Program-made: the position numbers and the translations under genes | DNA from: Asterias rubens | Lineage: Eukaryota | Direction: 5' to 3' | NCBI RefSeq assembly: GCF_902459465.1 | Contig: NC_047064.1 | Location: 18,476,001-18,540,000, forward strand | Length of the DNA: 64,000 bases | Notes under the pieces: model-generated | The model's input: the letters and a program-made list of their open reading frames with translations, nothing else | Databases searched by the model: none | Told to the model about the DNA's origin: nothing | Part shown: in pieces, positions 22,123 through 64,000 of the stretch | Position numbering within the stretch: position 1 is the first letter of the stretch | Layout of the letters: each line of letters starts with the position of its first letter

Positions 22123-22917
22123 CTAGAGTTTGTTCACCGAATTCTTAATGTCTTGTTTTTCATACTCATCTGCTTTCTCTCTCTGTTCTTTCCAGTCATC
22201 AGGCTTGATGTCAATGCCCAAGTCTTCAACTGTTTTTTTGAGTACTTCATATCCTGATTCAATACTTTGAATCTTTTCTTTCAAGTTTTCCATTTTTTTT
22301 AGTTTTTGAATGTCACTGCCTTCAATGTCCAAGCTTTCATCTGCGTCTTCTCCTGGTTTAGACTTTTGCATTTTTCCAATATAATAGTCCAGCATTAAAA
22401 GTGTCACCTTCTTCCATGCAGAACTATCCATGGGTGACAAGGTAATCCTATCATTACCCTTTAACTTGTTGCGGCCGGTTTTATCTGTGAAGGTCTTGGC
22501 AAAGTGAATGTTAAACTCGACCTTGTCATGTTTTTCTATGAATTGTATGATCTTGTCAGCACAGTCACCACACGGGGAGTAGTTGATGTAGAGTGTACAT
22601 GTATACTCAGGTGACTTATTCGCTGACTCAGGTGACTTATTCGCTGAATCAAGGTCAGACTCAAGGTCAGCCTCAAGGTCAGCCTTAAGGTCAGCTTGGA
22701 AAAGAAGCTCAGCATGAAGCTCATTAGGTTTGTTGTAATACATCTTGGGGGTCCCTTCTGGACTTTGCACAATGAGAATGGTTTCCTTGGGCCATTCAAA
22801 CCGGTCCTTGGGCCATTTCCCTTGAGAGTATCCCGACCTGATCATGACAGCAATGTCATGATCAAAAACATGATCAATGTCACGTTCAAAACTGTCAGGC
22901 TCGTATTTGCTTGCCAT
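22123..22917 (-). CDS. DA1: AID/APOBEC-like cytidine deaminase, 264 aa (MASKYEPD...)
   Basis: ELHAE ... LYINYSPCGDC ... FNIHFAKTF. The ATG lies 13 nt after the acceptor tttacag|; the longer ORF-track start is intronic. Confidence 0.9.
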   Translation of the reverse strand: MASKYEPDSFERDIDHVFDHDIAVMIRSGYSQGKWPKDRFEWPKETILIVQSPEGTPKMYYNKPNELHAELLFQADLKADLEADLESDLDSANKSPESANKSPEYTCTLYINYSPCGDCADKIIQFIEKHDKVEFNIHFAKTFTDKTGRNKLKGNDRITLSPMDSSAWKKVTLLMLDYYIGKMQKSKPGEDADESLDIEGSDIQKLKKMENLKEKIQSIESGYEVLKKTVEDLGIDIKPDDWKEQREKADEYEKQDIKNSVNKL

Positions 22918-23220
22918 GCTGATAGAATTTCTGTAAAAATACATAGGAAGTTTCCATGTTAATTCTTTTTGCAATATTAAAGAAACATTCTGCTTTAAAT
23001 TGTATGCAGTTTGTGTGTGATATAATAACCACACTTCACAATGGACCATCTTGTTACCTGAACTCTTAAAATTTGTGCCTCCCTCGTTATAGTAGTTAAA
23101 CTCCCCTCCCCTCCCCCTATTTGGAAATCATTTACCGAAACACATTAATTTATTATTATTTATATTTTTCATTTGTTTACTTATGTATTTATTTATTTAT
23201 TATGATGAATAGGGTAGATG

Positions 23221-23259
23221 GCCTTAGCTTTCGATCCAATCCGGACCTTCTTCAGAGGC
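23221..23259 (-). ncRNA. Minimal type-I hammerhead ribozyme motif in the Penelope pseudo-LTR
   Basis: GCCU-CUGAAGA-A-GGUCC-GGAUU-GGAUC-GAAA-GCUA/AGGC: stems I and II pair, palindromic stem III (AGCU), CUA cleavage triplet. Confidence 0.75.
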
Positions 23260-23772
23260 ATAAAACAAGTACAAACAAATACATATCCATTTATAGAAAA
23301 AGATAGGGGGAAAGGGATTAAGGAAAGGATCCAGAAAGAAGCGGGAAAATACCAGCCAATCAAAGTTTCTATTTCAGAAACAATATTGGTGGCTATGAAC
23401 CAATAGGAGTGAAGTGGCGAGGACAAAGGATGTTTAGAATGAAAGGAAGGGTTACTGGACCATAAAAGTGGTAAATGTATTGTTCGACAACAATGCAGGG
23501 AGACATGAAAGGGTAGGATTAGAGAGCAAGTTGCATCATGATGCAACTAACAATGGTCAATTAATAAGAATAGCAAGACCAAAGGTATGATGATTTTAAA
23601 AATAGGTATGAGGGACCTGTGGAAAAAAGGGGGGGGGGGGTTACTTACATCAGATAGTTACAGTGATGAATTTATAAAAACAACTTTAAACTAGGTTAAT
23701 TTATACTTTATGTACAGAATATATACAACATATAAGTTCTTAGGCAGAAGTGAAGTGGAGGGTAATGAGAAG

Positions 23773-26118
23773 TTATTTATCACCAGTGTTTATGTTAAGT
23801 CCAAAGGGTTTGACTGTCTTGAGTTGGTGAATCCAGTGTGATTCTCTATGCTTGCGGTGTGTGTCATCACCATTGCAAGCTTCAATCACCAGAAGTTCAA
23901 CATCACTGACACTATGATTGGGGCTGTTGAAGTGGATAGAGACTGGGTACGGTTTCTTAGTCTTTATGGAAGAGACATGATTCGCAAAGCGAAGACTAAG
24001 TTTGGTCTTAGTCTCTCCCACATATTGTAGCCCACATCTCTTACATGATATGACATAGACTACATTACACGTGCTGCATTCAGAGTCGGTCTTGATGTTG
24101 TATGAAGAGCCAGTGGTATGACTCTTCACCTTACATGAGGGCTTAATGTGCAGACACGTTTTGCATTTGGAACGGGTACATTTGTGACAGCCCAGTATAT
24201 CTGTCGGGGGTTGTGTTTGGACTGTACCGGGGGGAATTTTGGCCCTGACTAGTATGTCACCAAGGTTCTTAGGGTGGCGGAATGCAACCATGGGAACCTC
24301 AGTGATTGCTGAGTGTAACCTGCTGGAGGAGTGAAGTATAGGCATGTTATTATTGAGAATTGAGGGAAGTTTGGGTAATTTGGGGTGGAAGGTGGTGACC
24401 AAAGCAACTCTATTGGTAGGAGTTTTTTTAGCTCCCGTGTTAGTCAACAGAGTATGACGAGGTACGTTGAGAGCCCTGTTGATAGCAAGTTGGACCCTAC
24501 GTTCGCTGTGTCCCCTAGATACTAGGTGTTTCCTTAGCTCTGATGAGCGCCTCTTGTACAGGGTATCTGTGGAACAGATACGCCTGATACGTAAGGCCTG
24601 ACTGTAAGCAATTGCCTTCTTACAGTGACTAGGGTGACAGCTATTGGAGAGAAGGTACTGGTGGGTGTCGGTGGGTTTACTGTAAACATCTGTGACAAGG
24701 CCATTAGGAGACTTGGTTATTGTTACATCTAGAAAGTTCACACTGGTGAGAGATTGTTCGGTGGTGAACTTTATGGTGGGGTGAAATGAGTTGATATGGT
24801 CAATAAACTCATCCAAGCTATCTTGGTCACCACACCAGATGGAGAAAATATCATCAATAAATCTCCACCAAACTAGTGGTCGGTTGGGGGCGGAGGACAG
24901 GAGTCTGTCCTCCAACTGAGACATGAATAGGTTAGCATATGAGGGTGCCATTTTGGTACCCATGGCAGTACCCTGTACCTGTAGAAAATGCCTGTCAGAA
25001 AATGTGAAATTATTCTTCATTAGAATGTGGCTCATGAGTTCCTTAATATGACTCACTGAGGGGCGGGACTGATTACTAGCATTGAGGGCAGAGACACATG
25101 CACTCATGCCTTCATGATGGGGTATGTTAGTATACAGTGATGAAACATCAAAAGTAACCAAAATAGCAGAGTCAGGTATTTGGTGCTTGACCTCATCTAG
25201 TTTGTGGAGAAAGTCTTTGGTATCCTTGATGAAGGAAGGAATACGGCAGACTAAGGGTTTGAGGAAGCTATCGACAAACTCAGAAATGCGCTCTGCGGGG
25301 CTACCATTCCCAGATACAATAGGTCTCCCCGGGTTATTGGGCTTGTGTATCTTAGGTAGAAGGTAGAACCTTGCTGTACGGGGGTCATGTGGGAGGAGAT
25401 AGTTAAATGTATCTTTCTCAATATCATTGGCATTATAAATCTTAACCAGGGTATCACTGATATCTTGGGAGAAAGATTCAGTGGGATCAGAAGCACATTC
25501 AATGTAATGGTCAGTGTTACTGAGCTGTCTAAGGCCCTCAGCAATGTAGTCATGTGTGTTCATGACTACAACTGCGGACCCCTTGTCAGCCCGTTTAATC
25601 ACTATGTCTGGTGATTGGCAGAGTTGTGTAAGGGCGTGACGCTCATCTTGGGGGAGGTTATTGGGAGTAGGGGTACTGGGGGCCTTAAGAACCTCGGAGT
25701 TAACCGAATTGATGTATGTCTCTAGAGCCACATCTCGGTTCTTAGGGGGTACCCAAGTACTCTTTTCCCCGAAGCGGTTGCGGGGAATAGGTTGGGTCTC
25801 CACAGATGACTCGTCATCCATGGAGGGCTCTACATGAAAGTATTCACGTAGGCGTAACCTACGATTGAACTGGGCCATGTCCTGTTGGAAAAGAAGTTGG
25901 TTAGGCTCTCTGGGTGTGGGGCAAAACTTAAGACCCCTTGAGAGGAGTTTAACCTGTGGGTCAGTAAGGACCATGTCAGACAGGTTAACTACAGTATTGG
26001 TCTCTGGCAACCTAACAGTAGGAGGAGCAATGGTGGCTCTCTTACTGTGGAAACGTCTATGGGTGTGTTTCTTATGGTTAGCCAGGACATTCATACGTTT
26101 CTTGTTCTGTTTGTCCAT
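23773..26118 (-). CDS. Penelope-like reverse transcriptase / GIY-YIG endonuclease, 781 aa
   Basis: RT motifs FDVSSLYTNIP, QGTAMGTKMAP, WRFIDDIF; GIY-YIG NVVYVISCKRCGLQYVGET...RF..H...E; no stops or frameshifts. Confidence 0.95.
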   Translation of the reverse strand: MDKQNKKRMNVLANHKKHTHRRFHSKRATIAPPTVRLPETNTVVNLSDMVLTDPQVKLLSRGLKFCPTPREPNQLLFQQDMAQFNRRLRLREYFHVEPSMDDESSVETQPIPRNRFGEKSTWVPPKNRDVALETYINSVNSEVLKAPSTPTPNNLPQDERHALTQLCQSPDIVIKRADKGSAVVVMNTHDYIAEGLRQLSNTDHYIECASDPTESFSQDISDTLVKIYNANDIEKDTFNYLLPHDPRTARFYLLPKIHKPNNPGRPIVSGNGSPAERISEFVDSFLKPLVCRIPSFIKDTKDFLHKLDEVKHQIPDSAILVTFDVSSLYTNIPHHEGMSACVSALNASNQSRPSVSHIKELMSHILMKNNFTFSDRHFLQVQGTAMGTKMAPSYANLFMSQLEDRLLSSAPNRPLVWWRFIDDIFSIWCGDQDSLDEFIDHINSFHPTIKFTTEQSLTSVNFLDVTITKSPNGLVTDVYSKPTDTHQYLLSNSCHPSHCKKAIAYSQALRIRRICSTDTLYKRRSSELRKHLVSRGHSERRVQLAINRALNVPRHTLLTNTGAKKTPTNRVALVTTFHPKLPKLPSILNNNMPILHSSSRLHSAITEVPMVAFRHPKNLGDILVRAKIPPGTVQTQPPTDILGCHKCTRSKCKTCLHIKPSCKVKSHTTGSSYNIKTDSECSTCNVVYVISCKRCGLQYVGETKTKLSLRFANHVSSIKTKKPYPVSIHFNSPNHSVSDVELLVIEACNGDDTHRKHRESHWIHQLKTVKPFGLNINTGDK

Positions 26119-26302
26119 TAGGGTGGACCTTAAGTGTTTGACGTTACATAGTATGGTATCTTGTAACTGTTCAAACTCTTCAATAGAGCATGACTCTTGG
26201 AGTTGAGACTCAGTGTTTGTTATCTCATTTATTTATTAATATTATTATTGGTTTTTGTGGCGGGTAGGAAAACAAACATCAAACCTTTGAGCTAACTAAT
26301 TG

Positions 26303-27480: not shown

Positions 27481-28665
27481 GTAGTGCGATGCGTTTAATT
27501 AATTATTCAACCTATCTGGAACCTTCAATGATACATGATCAGTGCGGTACAATGCCAAAACAGGAATCCAAATTCCTGTTCTGGCATCACACTTCCTATA
27601 AATCAGGAAACATTCATCATCCAGCAAAGTTGTCTCCAAATCAGGAAACGTACTGTGAGTTACCTGATCACTAGGGAGATGTTTGGTGTTTATTTCCAGA
27701 GTTGAGTTTTAGTATTGGGGAAGGATATTTACTTCGCAATGGTGGTATACCTAGCATGATATGTAGGTTGGTATATGGACGGCCAAATGTTCCATTTTGT
27801 TGAACAGACGCTAATGAAAAAGGTCAACATAGGGCCCTTTTGTTATTATATCTCAGTAACCTGACGGTCAATTGCTTAGTACAAATCAGTGAGGAATGGA
27901 CATCGACGTCATTTTTCTACAAAACTTCGACCAATGCAAAGTTCTTTTGACAACTTTAAAACAGCCGTTGCTAAAACGTATGTTTCACCATGGAGGTTTG
28001 ACATACTTCCGGGGTGTCAACTCTGAAACTAATCTAAAACGATAAATTCATGTACTCATTGAAAGGTTTAACTGGCAATACTTATATTAAAAGAATCAGC
28101 GGTGTATACATTATTTTTATCCAATTGAGTCCAAATTTTCACAGTTTTTTTTTTTAATGCAGTTTAGATACACCAAGTGAAAATACTGGTCTTTGACAAT
28201 ACCAAAGGTGTCAAGTGCCTTTAACAGCAAAATGGAAAGCATTAAGAAAACAAATCTTAGAGTACACAGCAAAGTGAAAAGCATATATAAAGAAAATAAA
28301 ACTTAGAGTATAATTTACATTAAACCCACCAAGAAAATTATATAAAAATAGGCCAGACCAGCTGTTACCTAAATGAATCCATTGAAAATTCTACAAACAA
28401 CTAAAAGGAAATGTATTTACTGCAAATCTATTGTTAAAAATTACAAATTACTTGATTCATCAAGTTTAATTTTTGGGTTGCACGTAAATTTCAACTTTTC
28501 TAAATCCATAATAATTTGTAAATCACTGGTGGCAGAGTGTGAACAGTAGAAAATGTAGTAATTGCAAAACCACTATAACTGTGTTGGGCAACTTAGTCAG
28601 CATAGTTTGGAACTCGCTTGTGAAAAATCAACGGTGCGAGAGGCCGTGGACAAAAGGAATGGTGG

Positions 28666-28693
28666 TATTGCAAAACAGCTGAGGGAAAGCCCC
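28666..28693 (-). promoter_or_regulatory. DA1 kB + C/EBP-like module
   Basis: Plus strand TATTGCAA ... GGGAAAGCCCC (minus strand GGGGCTTTCCC). Confidence 0.6.
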
Positions 28694-31418: not shown

Positions 31419-32390
31419 CTAAGAATATAGTAGATCGAAACTCGATCGTCCAGACCCATTAGCCAGCCAGTATTCCTCAAAAGGTGTTAGTTTTAGGGTA
31501 TCATCAAGTATTTCATCCTGAACCTCGTCTTCGTCCTCGCTCACTTCTTCAGGCCAGTATTCCTCAAAATATTCTTCAGGCCAGTATTCCTCAAAATATT
31601 CTTCAGGCCAGTATTCCTCAAAATATTCTTCAGGCCAGTATTCCTCAAAATATTCTTCAGGCCAGTATTCCTCAAAATATTCTTCAGGCCAGTATTCCTC
31701 AAAATATTCTTCTTCTTCAAAGATATCATGAAGTATTTGATCATGCACCTCGTCTGCTTCCTTTCTCATGGTTATCCATTTAGGAAATCTTTCAATGTCC
31801 AAGTATTTGAGTGCCGTATTCAATGACTCATATCCTGGCTTAGATCGAACCTCTTCCTGCAATTTTTGCATTTTTTGTATGTGAATGTCCAGTAATGATG
31901 TTGTCACAGACTTCCAATTGCTATCACTCATGGTTGACAAGGTAATCCCCTCTTGATACTTTAACTTTCGGAGGCCGTCTCCATCCTTGTAGGTCATGGC
32001 ATAGTGGATGTTAAATATAACCAAAGGATGGTTGTTTATGAATTCTATGATCCGGTCAGCACAATCAACACATGGCGAGTAGTTGATGTAGAGGTCGTAT
32101 TCGGTTTTCTGCTGGCGCATGCGCATCTTGGAAAAGTAGTCTTCAAGTGATAAAGATTGATCGGCTGACTCTATTTCATCTAGGAATGCACACTCGACAT
32201 GTTGTGCTCTTCCGTTTATGTGCTTTGGTTTGCTGTGGTTAATCTCGTTCAGTCTGTTACTTTGAACTACAAGAATGGCCTCCTGTGGCCATTTATATCG
32301 ATCTGATTCCACATGACGCCAATCCCGTACGCCCGTTCTGATCATGATTTCAATGTCATCTTCACAACTGTGCGGACTGCTTCTTGCCAT
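31419..32390 (-). CDS. DA2: AID/APOBEC-like deaminase, 323 aa, with (EEYWPEEYF)-repeat tail
   Basis: QHVECAF ... LYINYSPCVDC ... HYAMTY. The ATG lies 10 nt after the acceptor ttacag|. Confidence 0.9.
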   Translation of the reverse strand: MARSSPHSCEDDIEIMIRTGVRDWRHVESDRYKWPQEAILVVQSNRLNEINHSKPKHINGRAQHVECAFLDEIESADQSLSLEDYFSKMRMRQQKTEYDLYINYSPCVDCADRIIEFINNHPLVIFNIHYAMTYKDGDGLRKLKYQEGITLSTMSDSNWKSVTTSLLDIHIQKMQKLQEEVRSKPGYESLNTALKYLDIERFPKWITMRKEADEVHDQILHDIFEEEEYFEEYWPEEYFEEYWPEEYFEEYWPEEYFEEYWPEEYFEEYWPEEYFEEYWPEEVSEDEDEVQDEILDDTLKLTPFEEYWLANGSGRSSFDLLYS

Positions 32391-32883: not shown

Positions 32884-33205
32884 CTTGATAGTAACTATAA
32901 ATATAAATATCTCTGAAAAGAGCTGGTTTGGTCTCAACGTTTCTAACAGTATACTTTGCTCGTCTTCAGGAGAAGAGCAGAGTATACTGTTCGAAACGTC
33001 GAGACCAAACCGGCTCTTTTCAGAGCCAACACTCCATCAAAAGAGTTTTTACCCATGGTTGTAATAACAAATAATAATAATAAGACTCGTAATGCGCACA
33101 TATCCACCCTGCTTGTACCCGCAAGTTTACTATTAATTATTTATATTTATAGTTACTATTATTCTCCACACCATGCAAAGCTTCAAACACCATTTAATCT
33201 TCATC
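32884..33205. mobile_element. Second copy of the palindromic hammerhead mini-element, in DA2 intron 1
   Basis: Same arms and centre as 12320-12627; flanking repeat AATCTTCATCC; hammerhead (32932-32973) mutated; nested (ATA)n-GACTCGTAATGCGCACATATCCACCCTGC fragment with TTGTA duplication. Confidence 0.65.
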
Positions 33206-33878
33206 CACCTCAGAAAACACGTCACAAGTCCTTTTGTGCTGGCTTTCTGAGGCACTAGTACTTCAGTGTTTATTTATACTTTTCATTTAAATGGGCCTTT
33301 GCTGGGAACCGTGTAGGGTGCCACCAATGACGGTAAAAAAACAGTAGCTAAAAAGAGGAACAAATGGCTAGATTTTTTAAACAGTTCCAACACATTTACA
33401 GGGGAGAACACATCGCACTTCACGACCAAATGGTAACTAAGCACAAAATATACAAAAACAAATAGTCGACTTAGCTCCAGTGATTTTGTTTAAGATGTTC
33501 TTTGAAAAAATAATTGAGCAAGTTTTTTTTTACTAACAACTAAGGCTACTGTTTCCAAAAGTTCACTACAAATCTGTGACTGTAGACCTTTTTCAACAAT
33601 GATTCTGCTCCCTTTTTTGATACTTTTTGTTGCCATGACATGAATCCTTACTCACTGTGAATAAAGATGCACAAGTATGTTATGTAGTATTTACCTGTAG
33701 CAGTTTCAGCTTCATTAGTCGTCAAGTTTTTGAGAAAATCAAGGAGCCATGTTTTCAGGAGAGTAAGTTTATTGTAAATCTGTGGATAATGTGATTTTGT
33801 ATCCTTCAAGGAAAACACAGTTTTGTCTTCATTTTAACCCATACACATTGAACCAATAATGTGATAATATATACTTAC

Positions 33879-34015
33879 AGTCACTGACAGTTGTTGGTTG
33901 TTTTGAAAGTCCAGTTGGTCTTAGACGGCATAGATTTTTGCCTTTTGAGATCTTTTTAAGGACAGTCCGTTAGTGTAATTGCGGACAGTACTTTCAATAA
34001 ACCTGAGGCGTACAC
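33879..34015 (-). other. Putative proximal non-coding first exon of DA2
   Basis: Donor CT|GTAAGTAT; TATA-like CATAAATA at 34041-34048. Confidence 0.6.
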
Positions 34016-34849
34016 TGAAAACAGTGTTGTGCAACTCGGGTATTTATGTATTCAGCATTTCTGGAACTTTCTTTCACAAATCACTGGTGCATAGATTGTG
34101 GACAATAGAAAGTGCGGTGTTACAGAACTACTGAGGGAACGGTTCACCAAGTGCTTGAGAGGGCAGGTGTCACATGACTTATAGTGGGTATTCAATGTCA
34201 ACATACTGCTTGCAGAACGTTGTGATTGACATCGCAGCGAGAGTTTATAGGTCAACCAACAACCAATGAGACCGGGATGTTAGTAAACATTAGCATAATG
34301 AGCTCCGCCCTAAATTTTGGCAGTTACAGAACCATCAAGGCGCTACTTAGAAATACTCATGTACCGTACGTGTACCATGCAGATGGTAATGTGTATGTAC
34401 AGAGTATGGGTGTGTACATACGCTGTACACGTATTATATGCACTGTGTTATGTATGGGGGTGCGCTGGCGGAATTCAGTGATGGGGACTGGGATTTTGCA
34501 GGTCGCGGCTGGCTGTAGCGCATTGAACAAGGCTACAACATGGGTTGTTTTATGCTGGCTTTCTGAGGCACTAGTACTTCAGTGTTTATTTATACTTTTC
34601 ATTTTAATGGGCCTTTGCTGGGAAGGTGTGCCACCAATAATGGTAAAAATAATGGTAAAAATGTAGTTGCTCAAAAGAGGAACGAATGGCTAGATTTTCT
34701 AAACAATTCTCTAAACACATTTACAGGGGAGAAAACATCTCACTTTATGACCAAATGGTAACTAAACACAAAATAAACGAAAACAAATAGTCGACTTAGG
34801 GGCCATTCATAATAGTCAATGTTTAAAAATTTCGATTTGTTTTCGAAAT

Positions 34850-35475
34850 TGTTTGTAGGTACAATCAAAATGAAATTGGCAAGCACTAAAACTTTGTACA
34901 AAAGGACTCCAACATCAGTAGTTTATAGTTGTTCTTGGCAACAACTTTGTAGGTACAATCAAAATGAAATTGGCAAGCACTAAAACTTTGTACAAAAGGA
35001 CTCCAACATCAGTAGTTTATAGTTGTTCCTGGCAACAACTTTGTAGGTAGGTACAATCAAAATGAAATTGGCAAGCACTAAAACTTTGTACAAAAGGACT
35101 CCAACATCAGTAGTTTATAGTTGTTCCTGGCAACAACTTTGTAGGTACAATCAAAATGAAATTGGCAAGCACTAAAACTTTGTACAAAAGGACTCCAACA
35201 TCAGTAGTTTATAGTTGTTCCTGGCAACAACTTTGTAGGTACAATCAAAATGAAATTGGCAAGCACTAAAACTTTGTACAAAAGGACTCCAACATCAGTA
35301 GTTTATAGTTGTTTCTGGCAACAACTTTGTAGGTAGGTACAATCAAAATGAAATTGGCAAGCACTAAAACTTTGTACAAAAGGACTCCAACATCAGTAGT
35401 TAATAGTTGTTCCTGGCAACAACTTTGTAGGTACAATCAAAATGAAATTGGCAAGCACATAAAACTTTGTACAAC
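34850..35475. repeat. ~95-bp minisatellite, about 6.5 copies
   Basis: Unit TTTGTAGGTACAATCAAAATGAAATTGGCAAGCACTAAAAC... Confidence 0.9.
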
Positions 35476-35476
35476 A

Positions 35477-35805
35477 GTTTTTAGTTTGATAGTTTTTAGT
35501 TTGATAGTTTTTAGTTTGATAGTTTTTAGTTTGATAGTTTTTAGTTTGATAGTTTTTAGTTTGATAGTTTTTAGTTTGATAGTTTTTAGTTTGATAGTTT
35601 TTAGTTTGATAGTTTTTAGTTTGATAGTTTTTAGTTTGATAGTTTTTAGTTTGATAGTTTTTAGTTTGATAGTTTTTAGTTTGATAGTTTTTAGTTTGAT
35701 AGTTTTTAGTTTGATAGTTTTTAGTTTGATAGTTTTTAGTTTGATAGTTTTTAGTTTGATAGTTTTTAGTTTGATAGTTTTTAGTTTGATAGTTTTTAGT
35801 TTGAT
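35477..35805. repeat. 15-bp perfect tandem repeat (AGTTTTTAGTTTGAT) x~22
   Basis: Directly visible; produces the spurious VFSLI ORF. Confidence 0.95.
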
Positions 35806-36450
35806 ATGTCCCTTAAGACCCTTACATGACCCATTTTTAATTGTTCAGTGACGGCGAACAGACCTGCTTTGAGCCAGACGATGATCTGGACCAGCATGGT
35901 ATTTTATTTCCTTTTTGTTTTTACCATGTTGTGAAAAAAAAAAAAAAGAATTTCGATTTTCAGTTATTTCTTTTGACCCACCCACCCACAATTTCGAAAA
36001 AATATCAATTTTTGTTTTCATTGACTATTATGAATGGCACCTGTTTAAAATGTTCTTTAAAAAAAATAATTGAGCAATTTTTTTTTTACTAAGGCTACTG
36101 TTTCCAAAAGTTCACTACAAATCTGTGACTGTAAACCTTTTTCCACAATGATTGTGCTCCCTTTTTTGGATACTTTTTTTTCCATGGCATGAATCCTTGC
36201 TCACTGTGAATGAAGATGCACAAGTACAGTGTATGTAGTATAATACCTGTAGCCGTTTCAGTTTCATTAGTCGTCAAGTTTTTGAGAAAATCACAGAGCC
36301 ATGTTTTCAGGAGAGTAAGTTTATTGTAAATCTGTGGATAATGTGATGTTGTATCCTACAAAAAGTACCCAAACCCTTTACAAGGAAAACACAGTTTTGT
36401 CTTCATTTTAACCCATACACATTGAACCAAATGTGATAATAAATACTAAC

Positions 36451-36580
36451 AGTCACTGACAGTTGTTGGTTGTTTTGAAAGTCTAGTTGGTCTTAGACGG
36501 CACAGGTTTTTGCCTTTTGAGATCCTGGCAAGGACAGTCCCTTAGTGTGACAGCACTTTCAATAAATCTAAGGTGTAAAC
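36451..36580 (-). other. Duplicated distal first exon of DA2
   Basis: Near-copy of 33879-34015 with donor CT|GTTAGTAT; no CDS between it and DA2. Confidence 0.55.
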
Positions 36581-36635
36581 TGAAAACAAAGTTGGGCAAC
36601 TTAGATATTTATTTAGCATTTCTGGAACTTTTTGG

Positions 36636-36663
36636 TATTGCAAAGCCACCATGGGAAATCCCC
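36636..36663 (-). promoter_or_regulatory. DA2 distal kB + C/EBP-like module
   Basis: TATTGCAA ... GGGAAATCCCC. Confidence 0.65.
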
Positions 36664-38751: not shown

Positions 38752-39480
38752 CTAAGTCCTTCCACAAATAGCCTTGAACATCTTTAGCATCATTATAAAC
38801 TTTTCATTGTCTTCATAGATTTGTTCAAGTACTTCTTCTTCAGTCTCGTCCGATTTCTCTCTCATTCGTATCCATCCAGGAGATGTTTCAATACCCAAGT
38901 AAGCGACTGCGATCGCTAATGACTCGTATCCCGACTTGCACCGAAGAAGTGTTTTCTTTGATTTTTTTCTGTGAAATTTTAGAATTGATGTTAACACAGC
39001 CTTCCATGTGTCACCAGTCATGGTTGCCAAGGCAATGCGGTCTCGGTTTATTAACATTCGGATGCCGTCTCCACCCTTGTAGGTCATGGCATAGTGGATG
39101 TGAAATGCAACAGAAGGGTGGTTGTTTATGAATCTTATGATCCGGTCAGCACAATCAACACATGGCGAATAGTTGATGAAGAGGTCGTATTCAGTCATCT
39201 TCTGGGGCATGCACATCCTGGAAAAGTTGTCTTCAAATGATAAAGACCAGTCTGCACACTCGAGGTCATCTAGGAAAGCACACTCGGCATGTTGTGACGG
39301 GGATTTTTTCGTTTTTCTTCTGCTGTGAAAAATCCTTTCCGTTCTGTCACTTTGAACGACGAGAATGGCTTCATGCGGCCATTTATACCGCTTGGATGTC
39401 TTGCGGCGTGGATCCTGTACGCCCGTTCTGATCATGATTTCAATGTCATCTTCACAACTGCGAGGCGCGTTGGTTGCCAT
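38752..39480 (-). CDS. DA3: AID/APOBEC-like deaminase, 242 aa
   Basis: QHAECAF ... LFINYSPCVDC. The ATG lies 12 nt after a poly-T tract and acceptor. Confidence 0.9.
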   Translation of the reverse strand: MATNAPRSCEDDIEIMIRTGVQDPRRKTSKRYKWPHEAILVVQSDRTERIFHSRRKTKKSPSQHAECAFLDDLECADWSLSFEDNFSRMCMPQKMTEYDLFINYSPCVDCADRIIRFINNHPSVAFHIHYAMTYKGGDGIRMLINRDRIALATMTGDTWKAVLTSILKFHRKKSKKTLLRCKSGYESLAIAVAYLGIETSPGWIRMREKSDETEEEVLEQIYEDNEKFIMMLKMFKAICGRT

Positions 39481-40907: not shown

Positions 40908-40990
40908 TATTGCGAAATCTTTGAGGCTAGCATCAAAGTTAGTTCATTTCTTACAACTGTTGTATTGCGAAATCTTTGAGGGAGTTCCCC
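40908..40990 (-). promoter_or_regulatory. DA3 kB + repeated C/EBP module
   Basis: TATTGCGAAAT twice, then GGGAGTTCCCC. Confidence 0.65.
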
Positions 40991-45200: not shown

Positions 45201-45297
45201 TGGAAACAATGTTGGGCAACTCGGTCATTTGTTAAGCATTTTCTGGACTTTGATCTTAATATGTCACTGTTACCAGAGTAACGGTGACAAAAAGTGG

Positions 45298-45325
45298 TAT
45301 TGCAAAGCCATTGAGGGAAATCCCC
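45298..45325 (-). promoter_or_regulatory. DA4 kB + C/EBP-like module
   Basis: TATTGCAA ... GGGAAATCCCC. Confidence 0.65.
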
Positions 45326-46611: not shown

Positions 46612-48133
46612 ACCGATGTGGATGACATACTCAACAGGGAAATGAAAAAAAAAATTGTTATCTGTAATAAAGAAAGTACCTTTTATGGAATGATTCTTTG
46701 CTCAGTGAATAGTTTTTCTTCTAACTTGGTATTTTATTATCCTCTTGGAGTCAATTGCACATAATCATAATAATGTACTACTGAAAATATTTGATAAATA
46801 AAATAATATACCGCGTAATAATCCATAATACTGCACCACCTTATAAACCGGTGGTCTCATAATTCAAAAACCTGTCTTAACAAACAAGGGAGCACTTTAG
46901 GCGGGCTCCTTGTTGAAGCGCTATATATACAAACTAGTTATTATTATTCCTATTTTTAGCTGTTCCGACCCACTGTCGAAACAGGTATTGTTTTTGTCAA
47001 GATTTTTATCATTTTCTGTCTTACTCTTTGTTTCTGCCTAACCCCCCGTAGCGTTTGTACACTTTTTTTGCATCCTAAAGTGTAAAAATGAAAGAGTTAG
47101 ATCTTATATCAAATTGAAGCTTAGAACATAAACTTAACTCTAAAGTAAAACAAAAATTTCAATTACTTAACGATGTGATCTGCATTTGAATATTAAAATA
47201 CTAAATCTTTGCAGCACCATATCTCATGAAGTTCATAGCCGATTTTGAAACCTTTTTCCCAGTTATATACTCCTTGGGCATTTGAGATTAGCATTGGGTA
47301 ACCATGACCTAATGTTGACCTACCTCCGGGTCAACCGGAAGTAGGTCCATAATCTCAAGACTTTTGTTCAGATATAAAACCTTGAGCATTAAAGGTTAGA
47401 CAAGGGTTATCATAACCCATGTTGACCTTTATTTCTGGTTTCAAATTTCCTTTAGATTCAGGGTCAGAATGAAGCTCAGGTTTAGTTTTTTAGAGACACT
47501 AAAAGGAACATTTAAAAATACAGAATTGGTTTTGCTAGCAAAAAAAGTTGCTTGCAGTGTATGCACTTTATGTAATCCACCATATACATAAACTGCCAAA
47601 CCTGTAGAAGTTCGGCCATCTGGGTCACGAGAGAATAGTGAAAAACTGATTACAAATTTTGCATTGCATCGATGCCAACAAAAAATGAATAAAATGCTCA
47701 CCGAGCGATAAACTCCAAACGCGAAATCAGATTGCTTATTTCTCATCAAATATGAAATTTCAGACAGGAATATTTCAAAGGATGATTTCAACTATCATCA
47801 TCATTAGACCGTGTAAGTTTCATGTAAATCTGTGATTTTCACGATTCTTTTTCTTACCAATTCTGTAACACCCCTTTAATTGGAAAGGGGCTTCTCAAAG
47901 GTCAAGAATCTTCTATCTTTAAATCAGACATTGGTATACATAGATTTGAGGCACTTAATCGAAGCAAAACCACACAAAATAGCTTTGTGTTTGTTGATAA
48001 ACACTAAATGTCTTTTATCTTGTTTTTTGTTTCTTTAGTACAAACCTGATTGAGTTCCATTTTCTTTTCCCTAAAAACAATCTTGATATCCAGATTCGCC
48101 TTGGGCGCTCTCCATGCCCTCCCTCTCCTCATA

Positions 48134-48793
48134 CTATTCCCTTAGAATTTTTGCAAGTATTTCATTTTCAGTCTTGTCTGCATTCTCGCGCCACCATTTC
48201 CATTTATCAGAGTCTTTAATTAGGTCTAAGTGTTTAACTACTTTTGTTATTGACTCATACCCTGAATTATCCCGGCGAATAATCTCCAAAACTGGGATTT
48301 CTTTTTTGTGAAAGTCTAGAATTGCTGTTATCACAGACTGCCATTTACCACTATTCATGGTTGCCAAGGTTATGCGCTCTTGATGCATTAGCATTCTGAG
48401 GCCATCTCCGCCATCCTTGTATAACATGGCATAGTGGATGTGAAATTCAACAAAAGGTTGGTCGTTTATGAATCTTACTATTCGATCTGCACAATCAACA
48501 CATGGCGAGTTATTGATGTAGAGTTCATATTTGGTCATCTGCTGGAACATCAGAGGAACAGAGTCTTTGAATTCTGAGTTCCAACCACCAGACTCGACAA
48601 GCTTGAGATCATCTAGGAAGGCATCCTCGGCATGTTTTGGTGTATTTCCTCTTCTCAGTCTGCTGTGATAAATCTCCCTCAGTTTGGTACTTTGAACTAT
48701 AAGAATTGTTTTCTTTTCTTGTGAAGTTTGTTGTCCTTGGCTAAGCATGTTTTCAATGTTCTCTGTCCAATTGCTCTGCACGTTTCCTGCCAT
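48134..48793 (-). CDS. DA5: AID/APOBEC-like deaminase, 219 aa, short loop 1, no tail
   Basis: KHAEDAF ... LYINNSPCVDC; acceptor 13 nt upstream of the ATG. Confidence 0.88.
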   Translation of the reverse strand: MAGNVQSNWTENIENMLSQGQQTSQEKKTILIVQSTKLREIYHSRLRRGNTPKHAEDAFLDDLKLVESGGWNSEFKDSVPLMFQQMTKYELYINNSPCVDCADRIVRFINDQPFVEFHIHYAMLYKDGGDGLRMLMHQERITLATMNSGKWQSVITAILDFHKKEIPVLEIIRRDNSGYESITKVVKHLDLIKDSDKWKWWRENADKTENEILAKILRE

Positions 48794-49504
48794 ACTGGTA
48801 TGACACCTGTAAAAGAACAGACAAAATGCACATCTCAGCTTTTGGTAATATCTTAAAAGCATGTGTGTAATTCAGACTTTGAACTTAGCGATTGCCCATT
48901 TGACAAATATGAGCGGAAACAGGGGCGGGCAAGTAAATCTTTTAAAAGTGCAGGGAGGGGGGAAAGAACAGAGCAATGCATGTATGGGCCAGGGGAAAGC
49001 AACGCTGGGCCAGGAGGGAAGGGGGGGGGGGGCCAAGCCAGGCAGGGGGAAGAAAAGGGAAGTGCAGGGGATAAAGCAGGAGGCAGAGCAAGACATCAGA
49101 GGGGGTAGGGACAGAATGGTAGGGGGCAGGGTGGGGTAGGTAAAGTCAGGCAATAGTGTGGGGGGGGGGGGCGGAGGTGGGTTATGAAGGTTTAAAAACC
49201 TGCTAAGCAAATTTGTAAAACCCGCTAACAAACAAAGCATGGAAACCTTGGCATTATTACGGTTTGATTTGTGTAAGCTTTAGAGAAAGTTAAAGACCTC
49301 ACTTTTTAAAATGCATTTTGTCAGGGCTGAGATTAACGTTATTGTGTGCAAAACCCCCAAATTAAATAATTTTATAGATCTCAACCATTGTCAATTGAGT
49401 AAAAGGCTGGAGCATTAAACAAATTATTTGTATGTGATATATACATACTTTGTTTAACCCATACATTCACTTAACTCTGTAAAATATGATAAACATGTAC
49501 TTAC

Positions 49505-49615: not shown

Positions 49616-49710
49616 TGGCTTGCACTTGAAGATAGCATGGCCAATTTATGGTACAGTGCATAAACAGAAAATTTGTCATATATGTGGACTCTGGGCAATA
49701 GAAAAGGAGG

Positions 49711-49738
49711 TATTGCAAATTTGCCGAGGGAAAGCCCC
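49711..49738 (-). promoter_or_regulatory. DA5 kB + C/EBP-like module
   Basis: TATTGCAA ... GGGAAAGCCCC. Confidence 0.65.
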
Positions 49739-49749
49739 TCTTTCCTATG

Positions 49750-59492: not shown

Positions 59493-60107
59493 ATGGGCAT
59501 ATGTTTTTGATGTCTAATGATCGATGTCATGTTTATGGGCATATGTTTTTGATGTCTAATGATCAATGTCATGTTTATGGGCATATGTTTTGGCTATCTG
59601 ATAACATAAAACATTCAAACAAAAAATTGTGCAGCCAAGTGGTTAACTGACGTATCATGCAAGGATATTGACAAAGTTCATGTACTGCATGCAGGAATGC
59701 ATAAAATGTAAAAAAAAAAAAAAAAAAAAAAAAAGGCTAAACTACCCCAAAAGACGGTCGACTTCAAACTTTGTGACGTCAAATGGAAACTATCTATTTA
59801 GATGTGACTGATGTCATTTACTTAATTCAGATTACGCCTTCACCTATTGTTGTTGGTAAGCAGTTAACACTTAGGCCTATTCTTACATAATTTTCAATAA
59901 ATAAAACAACCCAATGCAATATTTACAGGCAAATTGAGAAAATCTGTAAAACTTAAATTCCTGTCACGCCCTTTACGCTAAGTTTTCCATAGGGTCAAAA
60001 CTGCATTCACATTCAACAGTGTTTAAATGCGCGTGCTTTTGTGTTTATTGCAATTGAATGTTTCCCTGATTTTTGATGCTGCCTGATTTTTTAATCACAT
60101 ACATTGA

Positions 60108-61505
60108 CTACTTTTTTGAAGGTCTCAAAGTCTCGGTCTCGGACCCTCCGGTCTTGGTCTCGAGTTGCCGGGTCTTGGTTTTGGTCTCAACTTGAGGAGT
60201 CTTAGTCTTGGTTTTGGTCTTGGGCTTGGTCTTGGGCTTGGTCGCGACTTCCTGTGCCTTGGTCTTAGTTTTGGTTTTAACTTGTCGAGTCTTGGTCTTG
60301 GTCTCGACTTGCTGTGTCTTGTTCTTGTTTGTGGTCTTGGTCTTGGTCTTGGTCTTGGTCTTGGAAACAACAACGGCAGGGGGCAGAGCAGGAAAGGGGG
60401 AAGGGCAGGGTAGTGGGATGGTCAGGGTAGGGGTAAGAGCAGGGTAGGGGGAAGAACAGGGCAATGGGAGGAGCAGGGCAGGGGGGAGAGCAAGGCAGGT
60501 GGAAGAGGAGGGGAGGGGAAAAAGCAGGGTAGGGGGTAGAGCAGAGGAGGGAGAAGAGCAGGGGAGTGGGAACAGCAGGGCAGGTGGCAGAGCAAGGCGG
60601 GTGGAAGAGGAGGGTAAGGGGAAGAGCAGGGAAGGGGGAAGAGCAGGGTAGGGGGCTGATGTTGTAATAAGGGGGAAGAGCAGAGCAAGGGGAAGGGCAG
60701 GGTAGGGAGCAGAGAAGGGCAAGGGGCAGAGCGGGGCAGTGGGACAGGGCTGTCTTTTTCCCCGTCCAGATCTTGATGTCCTCAATCCAGACTTGCCTTG
60801 GGCCCCCTCACTCTCATTGTACAATTCCCTTTGTATTTTTGCAAGTGTTTCTTTTGCAGTCTTGTCTGCTTCCTCTCTCCATACTATCCATTCCTTAGAG
60901 TCCTCAATGTCGTAGTGTTTGACTATTTTCGCTAATGACTTGTTCCCCGACTTATCACAACGATTTTGTTTCAAAATTTTGATAGTTGGTCTGCAAATGT
61001 CTAGAGTTGCTGTTATCACAGACTGCCATGTATCGCTATTCATGGTTGCCAAGGTTATGCCCCTTTGATGCGTTAACTTTCTGAGGCCATCTCCGCCATC
61101 CTTGTATAACATGGCATAGTGGATGTGAAATTCAACGGAAGGTTGGTTGCTTATGAATCTTACGATTCGGTCCGCGCAATCAACACATGGTGAGTAGTTG
61201 ATGTACAGTTCGTATTCCGTCATCTGCCGGGACATCGGAAGAACAGAGTCTTTGAACTCTGAGTTCCAACCACCAGACTCATCCGACTCGAGTTCATCTA
61301 GGAAGGCGCACTCGGCATGTTGTGCTGGCTTTCTTTGCCTCAGTCTGCTGTGATAAATCTTCTTCTGTTTGGTACTTTGAACTATGAGAATGGTTTTCTT
61401 TTGCCATAAATATTTTTTTTCCTTTAAATGTCTTGGGTCCTGTACGCCTGTTCTAAGTATGATTGCAGCGTCCTCTTTCCATCGGTTGTCCACACAGCTT
61501 ACCAT
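60108..61505 (-). CDS. DA6: AID/APOBEC-like deaminase, 465 aa, with Pro-rich and Lys/Thr-rich repeat-derived tail
   Basis: QHAECAF ... LYINYSPCVDC; acceptor 13 nt upstream of the ATG; the ORF stays open through two repeat elements. Confidence 0.85.
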   Translation of the reverse strand: MVSCVDNRWKEDAAIILRTGVQDPRHLKEKKYLWQKKTILIVQSTKQKKIYHSRLRQRKPAQHAECAFLDELESDESGGWNSEFKDSVLPMSRQMTEYELYINYSPCVDCADRIVRFISNQPSVEFHIHYAMLYKDGGDGLRKLTHQRGITLATMNSDTWQSVITATLDICRPTIKILKQNRCDKSGNKSLAKIVKHYDIEDSKEWIVWREEADKTAKETLAKIQRELYNESEGAQGKSGLRTSRSGRGKRQPCPTAPLCPLPFSAPYPALPLALLFPLITTSAPYPALPPSLLFPLPSSSTRLALPPALLFPLPCSSPSSALPPTLLFPLPSSSTCLALPPALLLPLPCSSPYPALTPTLTIPLPCPSPFPALPPAVVVSKTKTKTKTKTTNKNKTQQVETKTKTRQVKTKTKTKAQEVATKPKTKPKTKTKTKTPQVETKTKTRQLETKTGGSETETLRPSKK

Positions 61506-61911
61506 AGTGGTACGATGCCTGTAAAAGTGCAGACATGCACATTATGTTTATTTGGTCATTTGAAAAGCACATCTTTTTCTTTTAGGTCAGCACGCATGTG
61601 CGCGGCACCAAGGTATAATTTTTTTAAATTTTTTTTTCACTTTTGAGGTTTGTGCATGCCGTGAGTTTCAATGGTAAATTGAACCTTTGTGTCGGTTTGT
61701 TGAAACAAAAATTGTGAGTTTTGTTGCAAAGTTACCTAGCCTTATCATCATAATTTAAAAAGTAAGGCTCCTGAAGCATTGCAACTTCATGAGAATGTAC
61801 GCCTCGGTTAGCATTGTCTAAACATGCACAAGAATTAAAACTTAAAAAATACTGGTTTTCTCCGCAGTGTGTCAGTTTGTGTCGGTGACGATATGATCAG
61901 TATGTACTTAC

Positions 61912-61985
61912 AATTTGTAGATGGTTGGTTCTGCCAGTTGGTCTTTAAGCTTGCCTTTTGTTTAAGTTTAAATTAAAAAAATTGT
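61912..61985 (-). other. Putative non-coding first exon of DA6
   Basis: Donor TT|GTAAGTAC at the homologous position. Confidence 0.55.
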
Positions 61986-62077
61986 GGCTTACACTGAAGA
62001 AAGCATGAGCAATTTATGCAACAATTTATGTCATATATGTAGACTATGGACCATGCACTTGGCAATAGAAATGGAGG

Positions 62078-62105
62078 TATTGCAAGCCAGCTGAGGGAAA
62101 GCCCC
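62078..62105 (-). promoter_or_regulatory. DA6 kB + C/EBP-like module
   Basis: TATTGCAA ... GGGAAAGCCCC. Confidence 0.65.
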
Positions 62106-63302
62106 TTTCTATCATGTCTATCTTGGTAAAAGAGGAAATGACACATTTTGCAAAGCATTTTGCTCTGCTATACATGTGTACAAGGGAAACATGGTCACTG
62201 CTTAATCAAAAAGAAGCTGAGCACCCACCCAGTGGCGCAGTAGGTTAAAGACATTGGACACTATTGGTAATTGTCAAAGACCAGTCTTCTCACTTGGTGT
62301 ATCTCGACATATGCATAAAATAACAAACTTGTGAAAATTTGAGCTCAATCGGTCATCAAAGTTGCAAGATAGTAATGAAAGAAAAAACACGCTTGTCACA
62401 CAAATTGTTGTGCTTCCAGATGCTTGATTTTGAGACCTCAACTCTAAATTTGAGGTCCCGAAATCAAATTCATGGAAAAGTACTTCTTTCTCGAAAACTA
62501 CTCCACTTCAGAGGGAGCCATTTCTCACAATGTTGTACGCTATTAATGTCTCCCCATTACTCATTACCAAGTAAGGTTTTGTGCTGATAATATTGTTGAG
62601 TAATTACATTACATAGTGGGCCATCCAACCCCCCCCCCCCCCCCCCCCCCCCGGAAGTTGTTACTTACTTTTGATTTGTTGAAATTGAACAGGAAACAAC
62701 TAAAGGAAACAACTAAAGGAAAGACAAGAGGCTTTAAGTCTGATTTACAATTTATTTTGCTCTTAAAAAAAATCTGACAAATTGAGATTAAACTAAGCTC
62801 GAAATTTCTATTATCTTGTACTCAATAAAATATTCCTACTTTTTTTTCCCCAACAGACAACAGACCAAATTTAATGCCTGGAACATATTCAGATTTGTAA
62901 AACATGTCTTGAGGTTTTGCTGGCCATGAAAATAAAATGTTGTGTTTGCGATGTGTGTGTCAAATAAAGTTTCTTTATTAAAATCCTTATTAAAATCCTC
63001 CACTCTTTGTTCATGACATACACACAAACAAATTGAGGAATAGTAATTGAAATGATGAAAATATCAATAAATAATAAGTATCTATCGCACAATTAAACAT
63101 AACTATATTATCGCTAACAGAAGAGGGATTGCCCCGGTGTTTCTGGCAGTGGTTACTTATGGATGTACTGTGCCATTTATTAACTGTTCAGTGGGTCTCA
63201 TAATCAGAATCGAGAAAATGTCCCAAGTATTTATGAATCACTACATTCTACGACTCCTAAAGCAACAACAAAACAAACTCCAGACTGATTTGTGATTCAG
63301 AC

Positions 63303-64000
63303 CTACACGTATGTAAGAAATAACCTAATAATAATAATAATAATAATAATAATAAGACTTGTAATGCGCACATATCCACCCTGCTGGGTGTTCAAGGCGT
63401 TCTCCTCGTCATGAGAACTCTCCCCTTCCTCTTCCTCAGAACTTTCCTCCCCCTCCTCCTCCTCCCCCTCCCCCTCCTCCTCCTCTTCCTCACTTGAGTT
63501 CCTCAATCCAGATTCAACTTGGGCTCCCAATATCTCCTCATACCCTTCCCTTTGTATGTTAGCAAGTTTTTCTTGTTCAGTCTTGTCGTCATTCTCTCTC
63601 CACCATGTCCATTTATCAGAGTTTTTAATTATGTTTAAGTATTTAACTACTTTTGCTAATGACTCATACCCTGAATTATTCCGACGAATTTTCTCCAAAA
63701 CTGGGATTTTTTTTTGGTGAAAGTCTAGAATTGCTGTTATCACAGACTGCCATTTACCACTATTCATGGTTGCCAAGGTTATGCGCTGTTGATGCGTTAG
63801 CATTCTGAGGCCATCTCCGCCATCCTTGTATAACATGGCATAGTGGATGTGAAATTGAACAGAAGGGTGGATAATTATGAACTGTATGATTCGTTGTGCA
63901 CAATCAACACATGGCGAGTTATTGATGTAGAGTTCGTATTTTTTCATCAGAGGAACAGAGTCTTCAAATTCTAAGTTCCAACCACCAGACTCGTCCGACT
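63303..64000 (-). CDS. DA7: AID/APOBEC-like deaminase, 5'-partial at the window edge, poly-Glu tail
   Basis: Frame open from the window edge (SDESGGWNLEFEDSVPLMKKYELYINNSPCVDC...); very similar to DA5. The HxE motif lies outside the window. Confidence 0.85.
   Translation of the reverse strand, partial: SDESGGWNLEFEDSVPLMKKYELYINNSPCVDCAQRIIQFIIIHPSVQFHIHYAMLYKDGGDGLRMLTHQQRITLATMNSGKWQSVITAILDFHQKKIPVLEKIRRNNSGYESLAKVVKYLNIIKNSDKWTWWRENDDKTEQEKLANIQREGYEEILGAQVESGLRNSSEEEEEEGEGEEEEGEESSEEEEGESSHDEENALNTQQGGYVRITSLIIIIIIIIIRLFLTYV

Follow-up and report, generated by a model that had tools for sequence, protein, structure and literature searches.

A tandem array of AID/APOBEC-like deaminase genes nested antisense in an ATIC intron of the starfish Asterias rubens: a candidate locus of inducible immune mutators

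Here we describe a cluster of deaminase genes in a 64,000-nt stretch of DNA from the starfish Asterias rubens (assembly GCF_902459465.1, contig NC_047064.1, positions 18,476,001 to 18,540,000 of the forward strand), called the window throughout. At least seven co-oriented genes, DA1 to DA7, follow one another on the minus strand within a long intron of the housekeeping gene ATIC (purH), which itself runs on the plus strand. We read them as a tandem, lineage-specific expansion of AID/APOBEC-like genes whose products may serve as inducible immune mutators of foreign nucleic acid, and we put the probability of this reading at roughly 0.7.

Results

Gene content of the array

The original prediction, made from the letters alone, had placed seven co-oriented deaminase open reading frames (ORFs) on the minus strand. 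Both the ORF listing of the 64-kb window and a tblastn search of its whole length with six of the DA domains bear this out: the ORFs run from 22123 to the window edge, and tblastn returns the same seven loci and nothing else, with no extra deaminase fragments, frameshifts or internal stops. Coding-sequence coordinates of DA1 to DA6 are counted from the likely Met and include the stop codon.

22123 to 22917, minus strand: DA1 coding exon, 264 aa; motifs HAE and YINYSPCGDC; more diverged than any other copy
31419 to 32390, minus strand: DA2 coding exon, 323 aa; HVE and YINYSPCVDC, with a repeat-encoded acidic/aromatic tail
38752 to 39480, minus strand: DA3 coding exon, 242 aa; HAE
43379 to 44632, minus strand: DA4 coding exon, 417 aa; deaminase domain with a low-complexity acidic/Cys and R/G/Y tail
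48134 to 48793, minus strand: DA5 coding exon, 219 aa; HAED and YINNSPCVDC, with the region before strand 1 shortened
60108 to 61505, minus strand: DA6 coding exon, 465 aa; deaminase domain with a Pro-rich and Lys/Thr-rich repeat tail
63303 to 64000, minus strand: DA7, C-terminal two thirds, ORF open at the window edge; YINNSPCVDC and an acidic tail

Alignment and motif scanning agree with the earlier claim that the catalytic Glu and the zinc ligands are intact in DA1 to DA6. The HxE motif reads HAE in DA1, DA3, DA4, DA5 and DA6 and HVE in DA2, and [YF]IN[YN]SPC[VG]DC is found in all seven copies. DA7 had been said to show just SPCVDC inside the window, and so it does; its frame has no stop up to base 63998, reads ...SDESGGWNLEFEDSVPLMKKYELYINNSPCVDC and stays open to the edge, and HAEC is present in a close relative, P0001. 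The array reaches the window edge at DA7, and its copy number is accordingly given as at least seven.

Between copies the domains are 38-79% identical, with pairwise dS of 0.15-1.8, values that mark the DA copies as old paralogues and not as haplotype or assembly duplicates; the window is without any N. The DA2 product is identical to that of a called gene on LR699094.1 (GCA_902459465.3, A. rubens), beside which the DA1 and DA3 products are also called, and no record was found for the 465-aa DA6 product. Tandem or low-complexity repeats underlie four of the C-terminal tails:

31545-31712 (DA2), 43482-43904 (DA4), 60378-60744 (DA6) and 63340-63520 (DA7): tails from tandem or low-complexity repeats

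In the sister species A. amurensis the tails of DA4 and DA6 are still open and alike (411 vs 417 aa and 443 vs 465 aa, respectively).

Assignment to the AID/APOBEC family

All seven copies score above the gathering threshold of nine Pfam families of AID/APOBEC-like deaminases (AADs), namely SNAD4, NAD1, APOBEC_N, APOBEC2, APOBEC4, APOBEC4_like, NAD2, APOBEC3 and APOBEC1 (E 1e-7 to 1e-17, with best E of 1e-13 to 1e-17), and AAD family matches are likewise found in 55 of 55 aligned relatives. The match to dCMP_cyt_deam_1 stays below its cut-off (14.6-20 bits vs 25; E 6.5e-4 to 0.03). Precomputed, second-hand matches to PF18785 (Inv-AAD) at E<=1e-5 cover the DA1, DA2 and DA3 products, P0001 and A. 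amurensis proteins; our own hmmscan of the 55 members gave no PF18785 match, the model being probably absent from the library scanned. A search of PDB sequences with the domain profile gave matches to APOBEC3G/H/F/C/B, APOBEC1, AID and APOBEC2 only.

A word-indexed protein search lacked the sensitivity for this family (3 and 8 matches), and an exhaustive hidden Markov model (HMM) search over 1.84 billion representative proteins was needed. It gave 181 matches at E<=1e-3, just 7 of them at E<=1e-30. The closest named matches are Asterias proteins (A. rubens, A. amurensis), the other strong ones coming from ENA metagenome contigs and assembly GCA_014845345.1; Patiria miniata and Acanthaster planci follow at ~1e-17, and then mammalian APOBEC3s and one mussel protein.

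The predicted structure points the same way. An AlphaFold (AF2) model of the DA4 domain built from the 55-sequence alignment reached a pLDDT of 88.7 and a pTM of 0.87; an earlier model, built from 8 sequences, had low confidence (pLDDT 64.7) and was kept out of the fold searches. Foldseek with the DA4 model returned APOBEC3, AID or APOBEC1 throughout the PDB top 50 and the Swiss-Prot top 30, with no CDA, dCMP or TadA entry among them. VIA-align of the same model gave Z of 16.6-18.1 and rmsd of 2.5-3.1 A over 161-174 residues against A3G-CTD, A3A, A3B, A3H, AID and APOBEC1, the aligned part being ~170 of ~185 target residues. Furthermore, the order of its elements fits the APOBEC fold: an N-terminal helix, a sheet of five strands with a helix intervening between strand 4 and strand 5, and a pair of helices at the C-terminus.

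SNAD4 is among the top Pfam matches, but by score only. No signal peptide is apparent by inspection, no dedicated predictor having been used: the N-termini are polar or charged (e.g., MARSSPYSCGYDIE, MASKYEPDSFERD) with no hydrophobic stretch, which argues that the DA proteins are not secreted SNADs. The sequence and model comparisons together thus support the DA genes as classical, non-secreted AID/APOBEC-like zinc deaminases, the AID/APOBEC-type assignment that had been proposed, rather than as CDA, dCMP or tRNA deaminases.

Active site and loops

The DA copies depart from familiar family members in several places near the active site. Between HxE and PCxxC the Glu-to-Pro spacing is 39-44 residues, where the family pattern is quoted as H[AVS]E-x(24-36)-PCxxC (PMC5956068). 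The extra length corresponds to an added helix before strand 3 in the DA4 model, and we read it as a clade-specific insert that does not exclude the copies from the family. SWSPC is replaced by NYSPC. Just ahead of the catalytic helix, sequence alignment places Asn in DA1 (MYYN) and in most relatives (Y-x-N) and Ser in DA2 to DA7, where I-[YFN]-H-S is followed by a longer loop, the equivalence being drawn by sequence alignment only. The Asn before the HxE helix (N57 in A3A, N51 in AID) is one that we take to contact the target nucleotide. Given the Asn-to-Ser change and a shortened loop after strand 4, the activity or the substrate of the DA proteins could differ from that of APOBEC3.

A shared upstream module

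The window holds more matches to a kB-like decamer than expected (15 vs 3.8; 0 of 100 shuffles reach 15), and aligning the regions around the kB sites gave a composite module, GGGG[CA][TA][TC]TCCC-N9-TT[TC]GCAATACC. In the form GGGRNWYYCC-N10-TYGCAATAC it occurs six times in the window against 0 expected, each time in gene sense and once upstream of each of DA1 to DA6:

28665 to 28693, minus strand: module nearest upstream of DA1, GGGGCTTTCC-N10-TTGCAATAC; 5.7 kb from the ATG, with a Penelope-like element between
36635 to 36663, minus strand: nearest module on the upstream side of DA2, 4.2 kb ahead of the ATG
40962 to 40990, minus strand: module 1.5 kb upstream of DA3; 29/29 match with A. amurensis
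45297 to 45325, minus strand: module 0.7 kb upstream of DA4; 29/29 match with A. amurensis
49710 to 49738, minus strand: module 0.9 kb upstream of DA5; 29/29 match with A. amurensis
62077 to 62105, minus strand: module 0.6 kb upstream of DA6; 29/29 match with A. amurensis

A. amurensis has the module five times, upstream of five copies. The flanks of the DA3 to DA6 modules differ by ~6-9% between the two species, while the modules themselves agree at every position; among paralogues, upstream regions are only patchily similar outside the module. The exact module is absent from the related starfish loci that were searched (L007, Patiria and Acanthaster, described below). We read it as a selected regulatory element, one that, from its sequence, Rel/NF-kB and C/EBP factors would be expected to bind.

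Gene structure and a predicted two-domain isoform

A pyrimidine-rich acceptor (...ttacag) lies 10-13 nt ahead of the ATG in all six complete genes. Its conservation before each ATG suggests that the coding region of every complete DA gene is a single exon behind a non-coding first exon.

In A. amurensis, the RefSeq isoform X1 (P0152, 578 aa) fuses the domain of the DA5 orthologue in frame to the entire DA4 orthologue. The DA5 orthologue is cut after ...RRDNSG and joined through the normal acceptor of DA4, giving ...SG-NYTS-MARSS. Donor-like GG|GTATGAG sites are also found inside DA5 (~48265) and DA7 (~63674) of A. rubens, so that sites for splicing DA5 into DA4 and DA7 into DA6 are both present; the acceptors of DA4 (~44645) and DA6 (~61518) lie 13 nt from the ATG, and the reading frame would therefore be kept in both joins. 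A two-domain isoform made by intergenic splicing is thus predicted, P0152 itself being a computational gene model.

Turnover and selection in the sister species

In a maximum-likelihood tree each of DA3, DA4, DA5 and DA6 has its own partner (1:1) in A. amurensis, and synteny is collinear. The DA3 orthologue, annotated as an 'uncharacterized protein', is 97% identical, and the orthologues of DA4 and DA6 are 94% identical each. Elsewhere the two arrays part company. DA2 and its surroundings (~27.3-33.9 kb of the window) are missing from the syntenic A. amurensis region. At the place of DA1 stands P0007 (CP134956.1, ~5333390-5334514; 10001-11125 of L005), an intact 374-aa ORF that shares 35% identity with DA1, reads HAD, not HAE, and is without the module. 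An insert of ~140 aa, in which some ten tandem repeats (…QPSSSEKDQEDLVKPVD…) follow one another, separates its catalytic helix from strand 3, the same place at which the DA copies have their spacing excess between HxE and PCxxC. The DA5 orthologue has a stop at codon 6, its RefSeq model beginning at a downstream Met, and the DA7-like copy of A. amurensis groups with DA5 and not with DA7 in the tree. The loss of DA2, the presence of P0007 and the stop in the DA5 orthologue point to birth-and-death turnover, in keeping with the birth-and-death array that had been proposed.

Orthologue dN/dS is 0.16 for DA3, 0.35 for DA6, 0.58 for DA5, 0.62 for the DA7 part and 1.16 for DA4, the last (~1.2) from few changes, with 0.47 for DA3 to DA6 pooled. 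Paralogues were compared by pN/pS (DA4 vs DA2/DA3 and DA6 vs DA5), with small counts and no site-model test. Of four measurements on the catalytic core, which comprises the HxE helix and the segment strand 3-helix 3-strand 4, three fell at 0.11-0.26; the HxE helix in DA6 vs DA5 was higher (0.72). Over the two comparisons the helix after strand 5 reached 4.7 and 2.2 and the N-terminus 1.2 and 1.5, and the insert before strand 3 gave 2.0 in DA4 vs DA2/DA3 and 0.57 in DA6 vs DA5. On these sequence comparisons the catalytic core is under purifying selection, and surface regions and C-terminal tails change fast; the pattern suggests positive selection.

The ATIC intron and the origin of the array

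The array lies in antisense within ATIC, of which the following parts fall in the window:

14259 to 14726, plus strand: ORF with an upstream ATIC exon (…LRYGTNPHQ…)
17603 to 17692, plus strand: ATIC (purH) exon (...KYCILT) bounded by a canonical acceptor and the donor GTAAGT; the last ATIC exon in the window
17693 to 64000, plus strand: ATIC intron of more than 46 kb, with the array in antisense

The later ATIC motifs GAGQxSR, SDAFxPF and the C-terminal HTNxRxFxH are absent from the window. In A. amurensis an annotated 592-aa ATIC gene on the opposite strand covers the whole 38 kb examined around the deaminase genes. An 11-kb environmental contig (L007) has one related gene (P0008), again antisense, between ATIC exons (…APGY…KYCVL) and (…GAGQQSR), the upstream exon being the same one that precedes the array in A. 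rubens. Acanthaster has two copies, one tail-to-tail with ATIC 8.7 kb past its stop codon and a second upstream and co-oriented. The neighbourhoods in Asterias, L007 and Acanthaster indicate that the linkage between the deaminase and ATIC is old in starfish. In Patiria miniata (L008, JADOBP010000013.1) three co-oriented copies lie within 21 kb with ATIC not nearby:

520-1375: first copy, split over two frames
10001-10978: second copy
17309-18076: third copy

The first of these is probably a pseudogene. Three co-oriented Patiria copies indicate that tandem arrays are general in starfish. In the maximum-likelihood tree all Asterias copies and P0008 form a clade (support 98/97), which is sister to the Patiria and Acanthaster proteins (support 93/92). 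Nesting in the intron is common to Asterias and the organism of L007; the Asterias lineage then expanded to at least seven copies, with an intron of more than 46 kb.

Short-read contigs and a further gene version

We compared the window with Logan contigs of four runs, two of them guessed to be RNA. In three runs contigs stop exactly at 48806, the predicted 5' edge of the DA5 coding exon, and in the same three the depth at 48900-49099 is zero; furthermore, a DA2-like contig stops at the DA2 exon boundary. Such contig ends at exon edges (48806 and 44633 in the window) are hints of splice-junction branches in an RNA assembly graph.

The metagenome contig that encodes P0001 (L001, 1930 nt) is 98% DA7-like in its middle, ~92.7% DA6-like upstream and ~92.4% DA5-like downstream. 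It was rejected as a full-length DA7, being DA7-like only in the middle; it could be a further (eighth) paralogue, a structural haplotype or a chimeric assembly, and was not counted as evidence for mosaic recombination. A divergent DA5-like contig in runs X2 and X4 (47807-48461) was considered as an A. amurensis allele and rejected, since 6 of 29 variants match; it resembles L001 at 21 of 29. In run X2 the 3' end of the reference DA5 was not seen.

Other features of the window

Between the genes, the array holds a retroelement and traces of further deaminase upstream regions:

23773 to 26118, minus strand: Penelope-like retroelement ORF, 781 aa, with reverse transcriptase and GIY-YIG
33446 to 34045, minus strand: relic of a DA4-type promoter-proximal segment with no coding exon behind it
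36042 to 36631, minus strand: second relic of a DA4-type promoter-proximal segment, with no deaminase exon behind it

The Penelope-like ORF lies between DA1 and its nearest module (28665), which places it within the presumed first intron of DA1. Both relics fall between DA2 and DA3 and are 74-82% identical to the segment just upstream of the DA4 ATG; they are probably remnants of lost array members or of unequal crossing-over. The DA2-DA3 interval also contains a tandem-repeat block (34852-35806) of a 94-nt unit repeated 6.5 times followed by a 15-nt unit repeated 22 times. Rfam at its gathering threshold gave no ribozyme within the array. In the ATIC region, 12405-12449 on the minus strand matches the Histone3 3'-UTR stem-loop of Rfam (35.4 bits vs a gathering score of 34); the plus-strand ORF at 12322-12630 that overlaps this match shares a peptide with the ORF at 32956-33258 and may belong to a repeated element.

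Discussion

We favor a history in which a single gene antisense in an ATIC intron would have given rise to a tandem expansion in the Asterias rubens lineage. Each DA gene may be an independently inducible transcription unit, switched on by Rel/NF-kB and C/EBP-type factors upon immune activation, and its product would deaminate cytosine in single-stranded foreign nucleic acid, be it that of ssDNA viruses (e.g., the densoviruses of starfish), retroelement cDNA or RNA. Differences among the loops and tails may direct the copies to different targets or allow escape from inhibitors, as in the mammalian APOBEC3 cluster. By the same analogy, the DA genes would have an antiviral or anti-transposon mutator role. 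One could go further and see a convergent starfish APOBEC3-like restriction locus, induced by NF-kB/C-EBP-type factors upon infection, yielding two-domain enzymes as well through a conserved SG|YES donor, restricting both ssDNA densoviruses and the retroelements (Penelope-like or other) common in starfish, and with ATIC transcribing through the array in antisense; as a whole we consider this extended version speculative and rather unlikely.

Several observations weigh against an array of inducible immune mutators. The HxE-PCxxC spacing of 39-44 lies outside the published x(24-36) (PMC5956068), Ser replaces the conserved Asn ahead of the catalytic helix in DA2 to DA7, and strand 4 is followed by a shortened loop. 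The module is assigned to kB and C/EBP by consensus matching only. Most orthologue pairs have dN/dS below 1, on small counts and with no formal sign of positive selection. The two presumed-RNA runs cover the DA4-DA5 intergenic DNA about as deeply as the genes, so that they may be or contain DNA, and we draw no conclusion from them on transcription. Finally, the deaminase activity that we infer for the starfish members comes by analogy.

Among other explanations, the one that stands up best is that the DA proteins are active deaminases which target the animal's own RNA or DNA and not invaders, through regulated self-mutation or editing of the APOBEC1 or AID kind. Self-directed editors do exist in the family, and Liu et al. 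raised this possibility for SpAIDL and LaAIDL (PMC5956068); furthermore, DA3 is strongly conserved between species (dN/dS 0.16), and the unusual loop residues could suit a different substrate. However, conserved self-editors are typically single-copy and slow-evolving (PMC5889660), whereas here at least seven copies diverge fast, are lost and decay between sister species and carry an immune-type promoter module. We judge this explanation improbable.

Closely behind it, and slightly less credible to us, comes the proposal that most copies are catalytically dead or redundant, serving as nucleic-acid binders or decoys or drifting into pseudogenes. The pooled orthologue dN/dS of 0.47 and the value of ~1.2 for DA4 would fit such drift, as would the early stop in the A. 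amurensis DA5 orthologue, the HAD motif and 140-aa repeat insert of P0007 and the Asn-to-Ser change in DA2 to DA7; the presumed-RNA runs give no clear sign of expression, and inactive AADs recur in the family (PMC5889660). Yet the A. rubens ORFs are intact and keep their catalytic and zinc residues (DA7 being read in part), the core pN/pS stays at 0.11-0.26 in three of four paralogue measurements, and the promoter modules of DA3 to DA6 are kept at 29 of 29 positions across species.

The remaining two explanations had been named as outcomes that would overturn the original prediction, and both are refuted. Free-nucleotide (CDA/dCMP) or tRNA (TadA/ADAT) deaminases mislabelled by motif are hardly tenable: HxE...PCxxC is common to both groups and a dCMP_cyt_deam_1 match exists below its cut-off, but every best profile and structure match is AID/APOBEC, and with this test negative the family assignment stands. 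That the copies are assembly or haplotype duplicates is the least credible of all, since the repeat-rich locus and the extra DA5/DA7-like variant in short-read contigs are outweighed by the identity and dS between copies and by the 1:1 correspondence of DA3 to DA6, in the same order, in the independent A. amurensis assembly.

The array is a compact, well-assembled system of seven paralogues with a shared candidate regulatory module, for which A. amurensis shows copy gain, loss and decay and L007 a single-copy, ancestral-like state in the same intron. To our knowledge, few invertebrate AID/APOBEC-like enzymes have been functionally tested, those of sea urchin and brachiopod, and their natural targets are not known. 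Starfish harbor abundant ssDNA densoviruses, which makes the hypothesis of an antiviral APOBEC-like ssDNA mutator directly testable in an invertebrate deuterostome.

How does the locus compare with known systems? Lamprey CDA1-like genes are also a fast-evolving, copy-variable AID/APOBEC expansion with C-terminal diversity (PMC5889660, section 12). They differ in being tied to variable lymphocyte receptor assembly. We know of no target system of that kind in starfish. Lingula LaAIDL1 and APOBEC3B/D/F/G have two domains, as does the predicted A. amurensis isoform X1 (P0152); they are fused genes, whereas the starfish two-domain form, known as a gene model only, would arise by intergenic splicing of separate genes.

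With the mammalian APOBEC3 cluster the DA array shares co-oriented tandem zinc deaminases and the predicted fold (Z ~18 to A3G-CTD, A3A and A3B), together with a conserved catalytic core, fast-diverging surfaces and copy-number turnover between related species. The starfish expansion is nonetheless independent, its copies clustering with Patiria and Acanthaster AADs and not with the A3 proteins, to which identity is ~16-19%. Its genes are single-domain except for the predicted read-through isoform and have NYSPC for SWSPC and, in DA2 to DA7, Ser for Asn; an antiviral role of the DA genes is a hypothesis.

The nearest described counterparts are in the same phylum. Echinoderms possess classical invertebrate AADs (Krishnan et al., 2018, PMC5889660). 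The same paper reports expansions that are lineage-specific and number 2-22 paralogues; in sea urchins, Lingula, Nematostella and other animals the paralogues lie together in a single region of the genome (its section 12), in arrays with pseudogenes, copy differences between individuals and mostly single-exon frames. The purple sea urchin has nine SpAIDL loci, five of them broken; SpAIDL1/2 are mutators in E. coli, and SpAIDL2 is induced by Vibrio challenge (Liu et al., 2018, PMC5956068). The suggestion that the architecture of the starfish locus is possibly undescribed was therefore overstated, since sea urchins, Lingula and Nematostella were already described as having tandem AID/APOBEC-like clusters (PMC5889660). 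Searches of article full texts (the main text in the case of Krishnan et al., 2018) turned up no paper describing an array in starfish, and the texts of PMC5956068 and PMC5889660 contain no starfish locus.

SpAIDL1-9 and other echinoderm AADs thus share with the DA array the phylum, the branch of the Pfam superfamily and the form of a lineage-specific multi-copy family in one region, with mostly single-exon frames, intact and broken copies, individual differences and a proposed immune role. The array differs in belonging to Asteroidea and in its low relatedness to anything outside Asterias-like starfish (7 proteins at E<=1e-30 among 1.84 billion). Compared by description, it is further set apart by nesting in the ATIC intron, by the module, by the 39-44 spacing with its helix and by the low-complexity tails. 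The picture of 2018 is unchanged; with clusters already published then, the starfish array extends a known type to Asteroidea with architectural detail, which will not surprise specialists. Apparently new features are the placement of the array, antisense within an ATIC intron and with a single-copy counterpart in a related starfish, the conserved composite module, loop changes specific to the clade and the predicted two-domain isoform.

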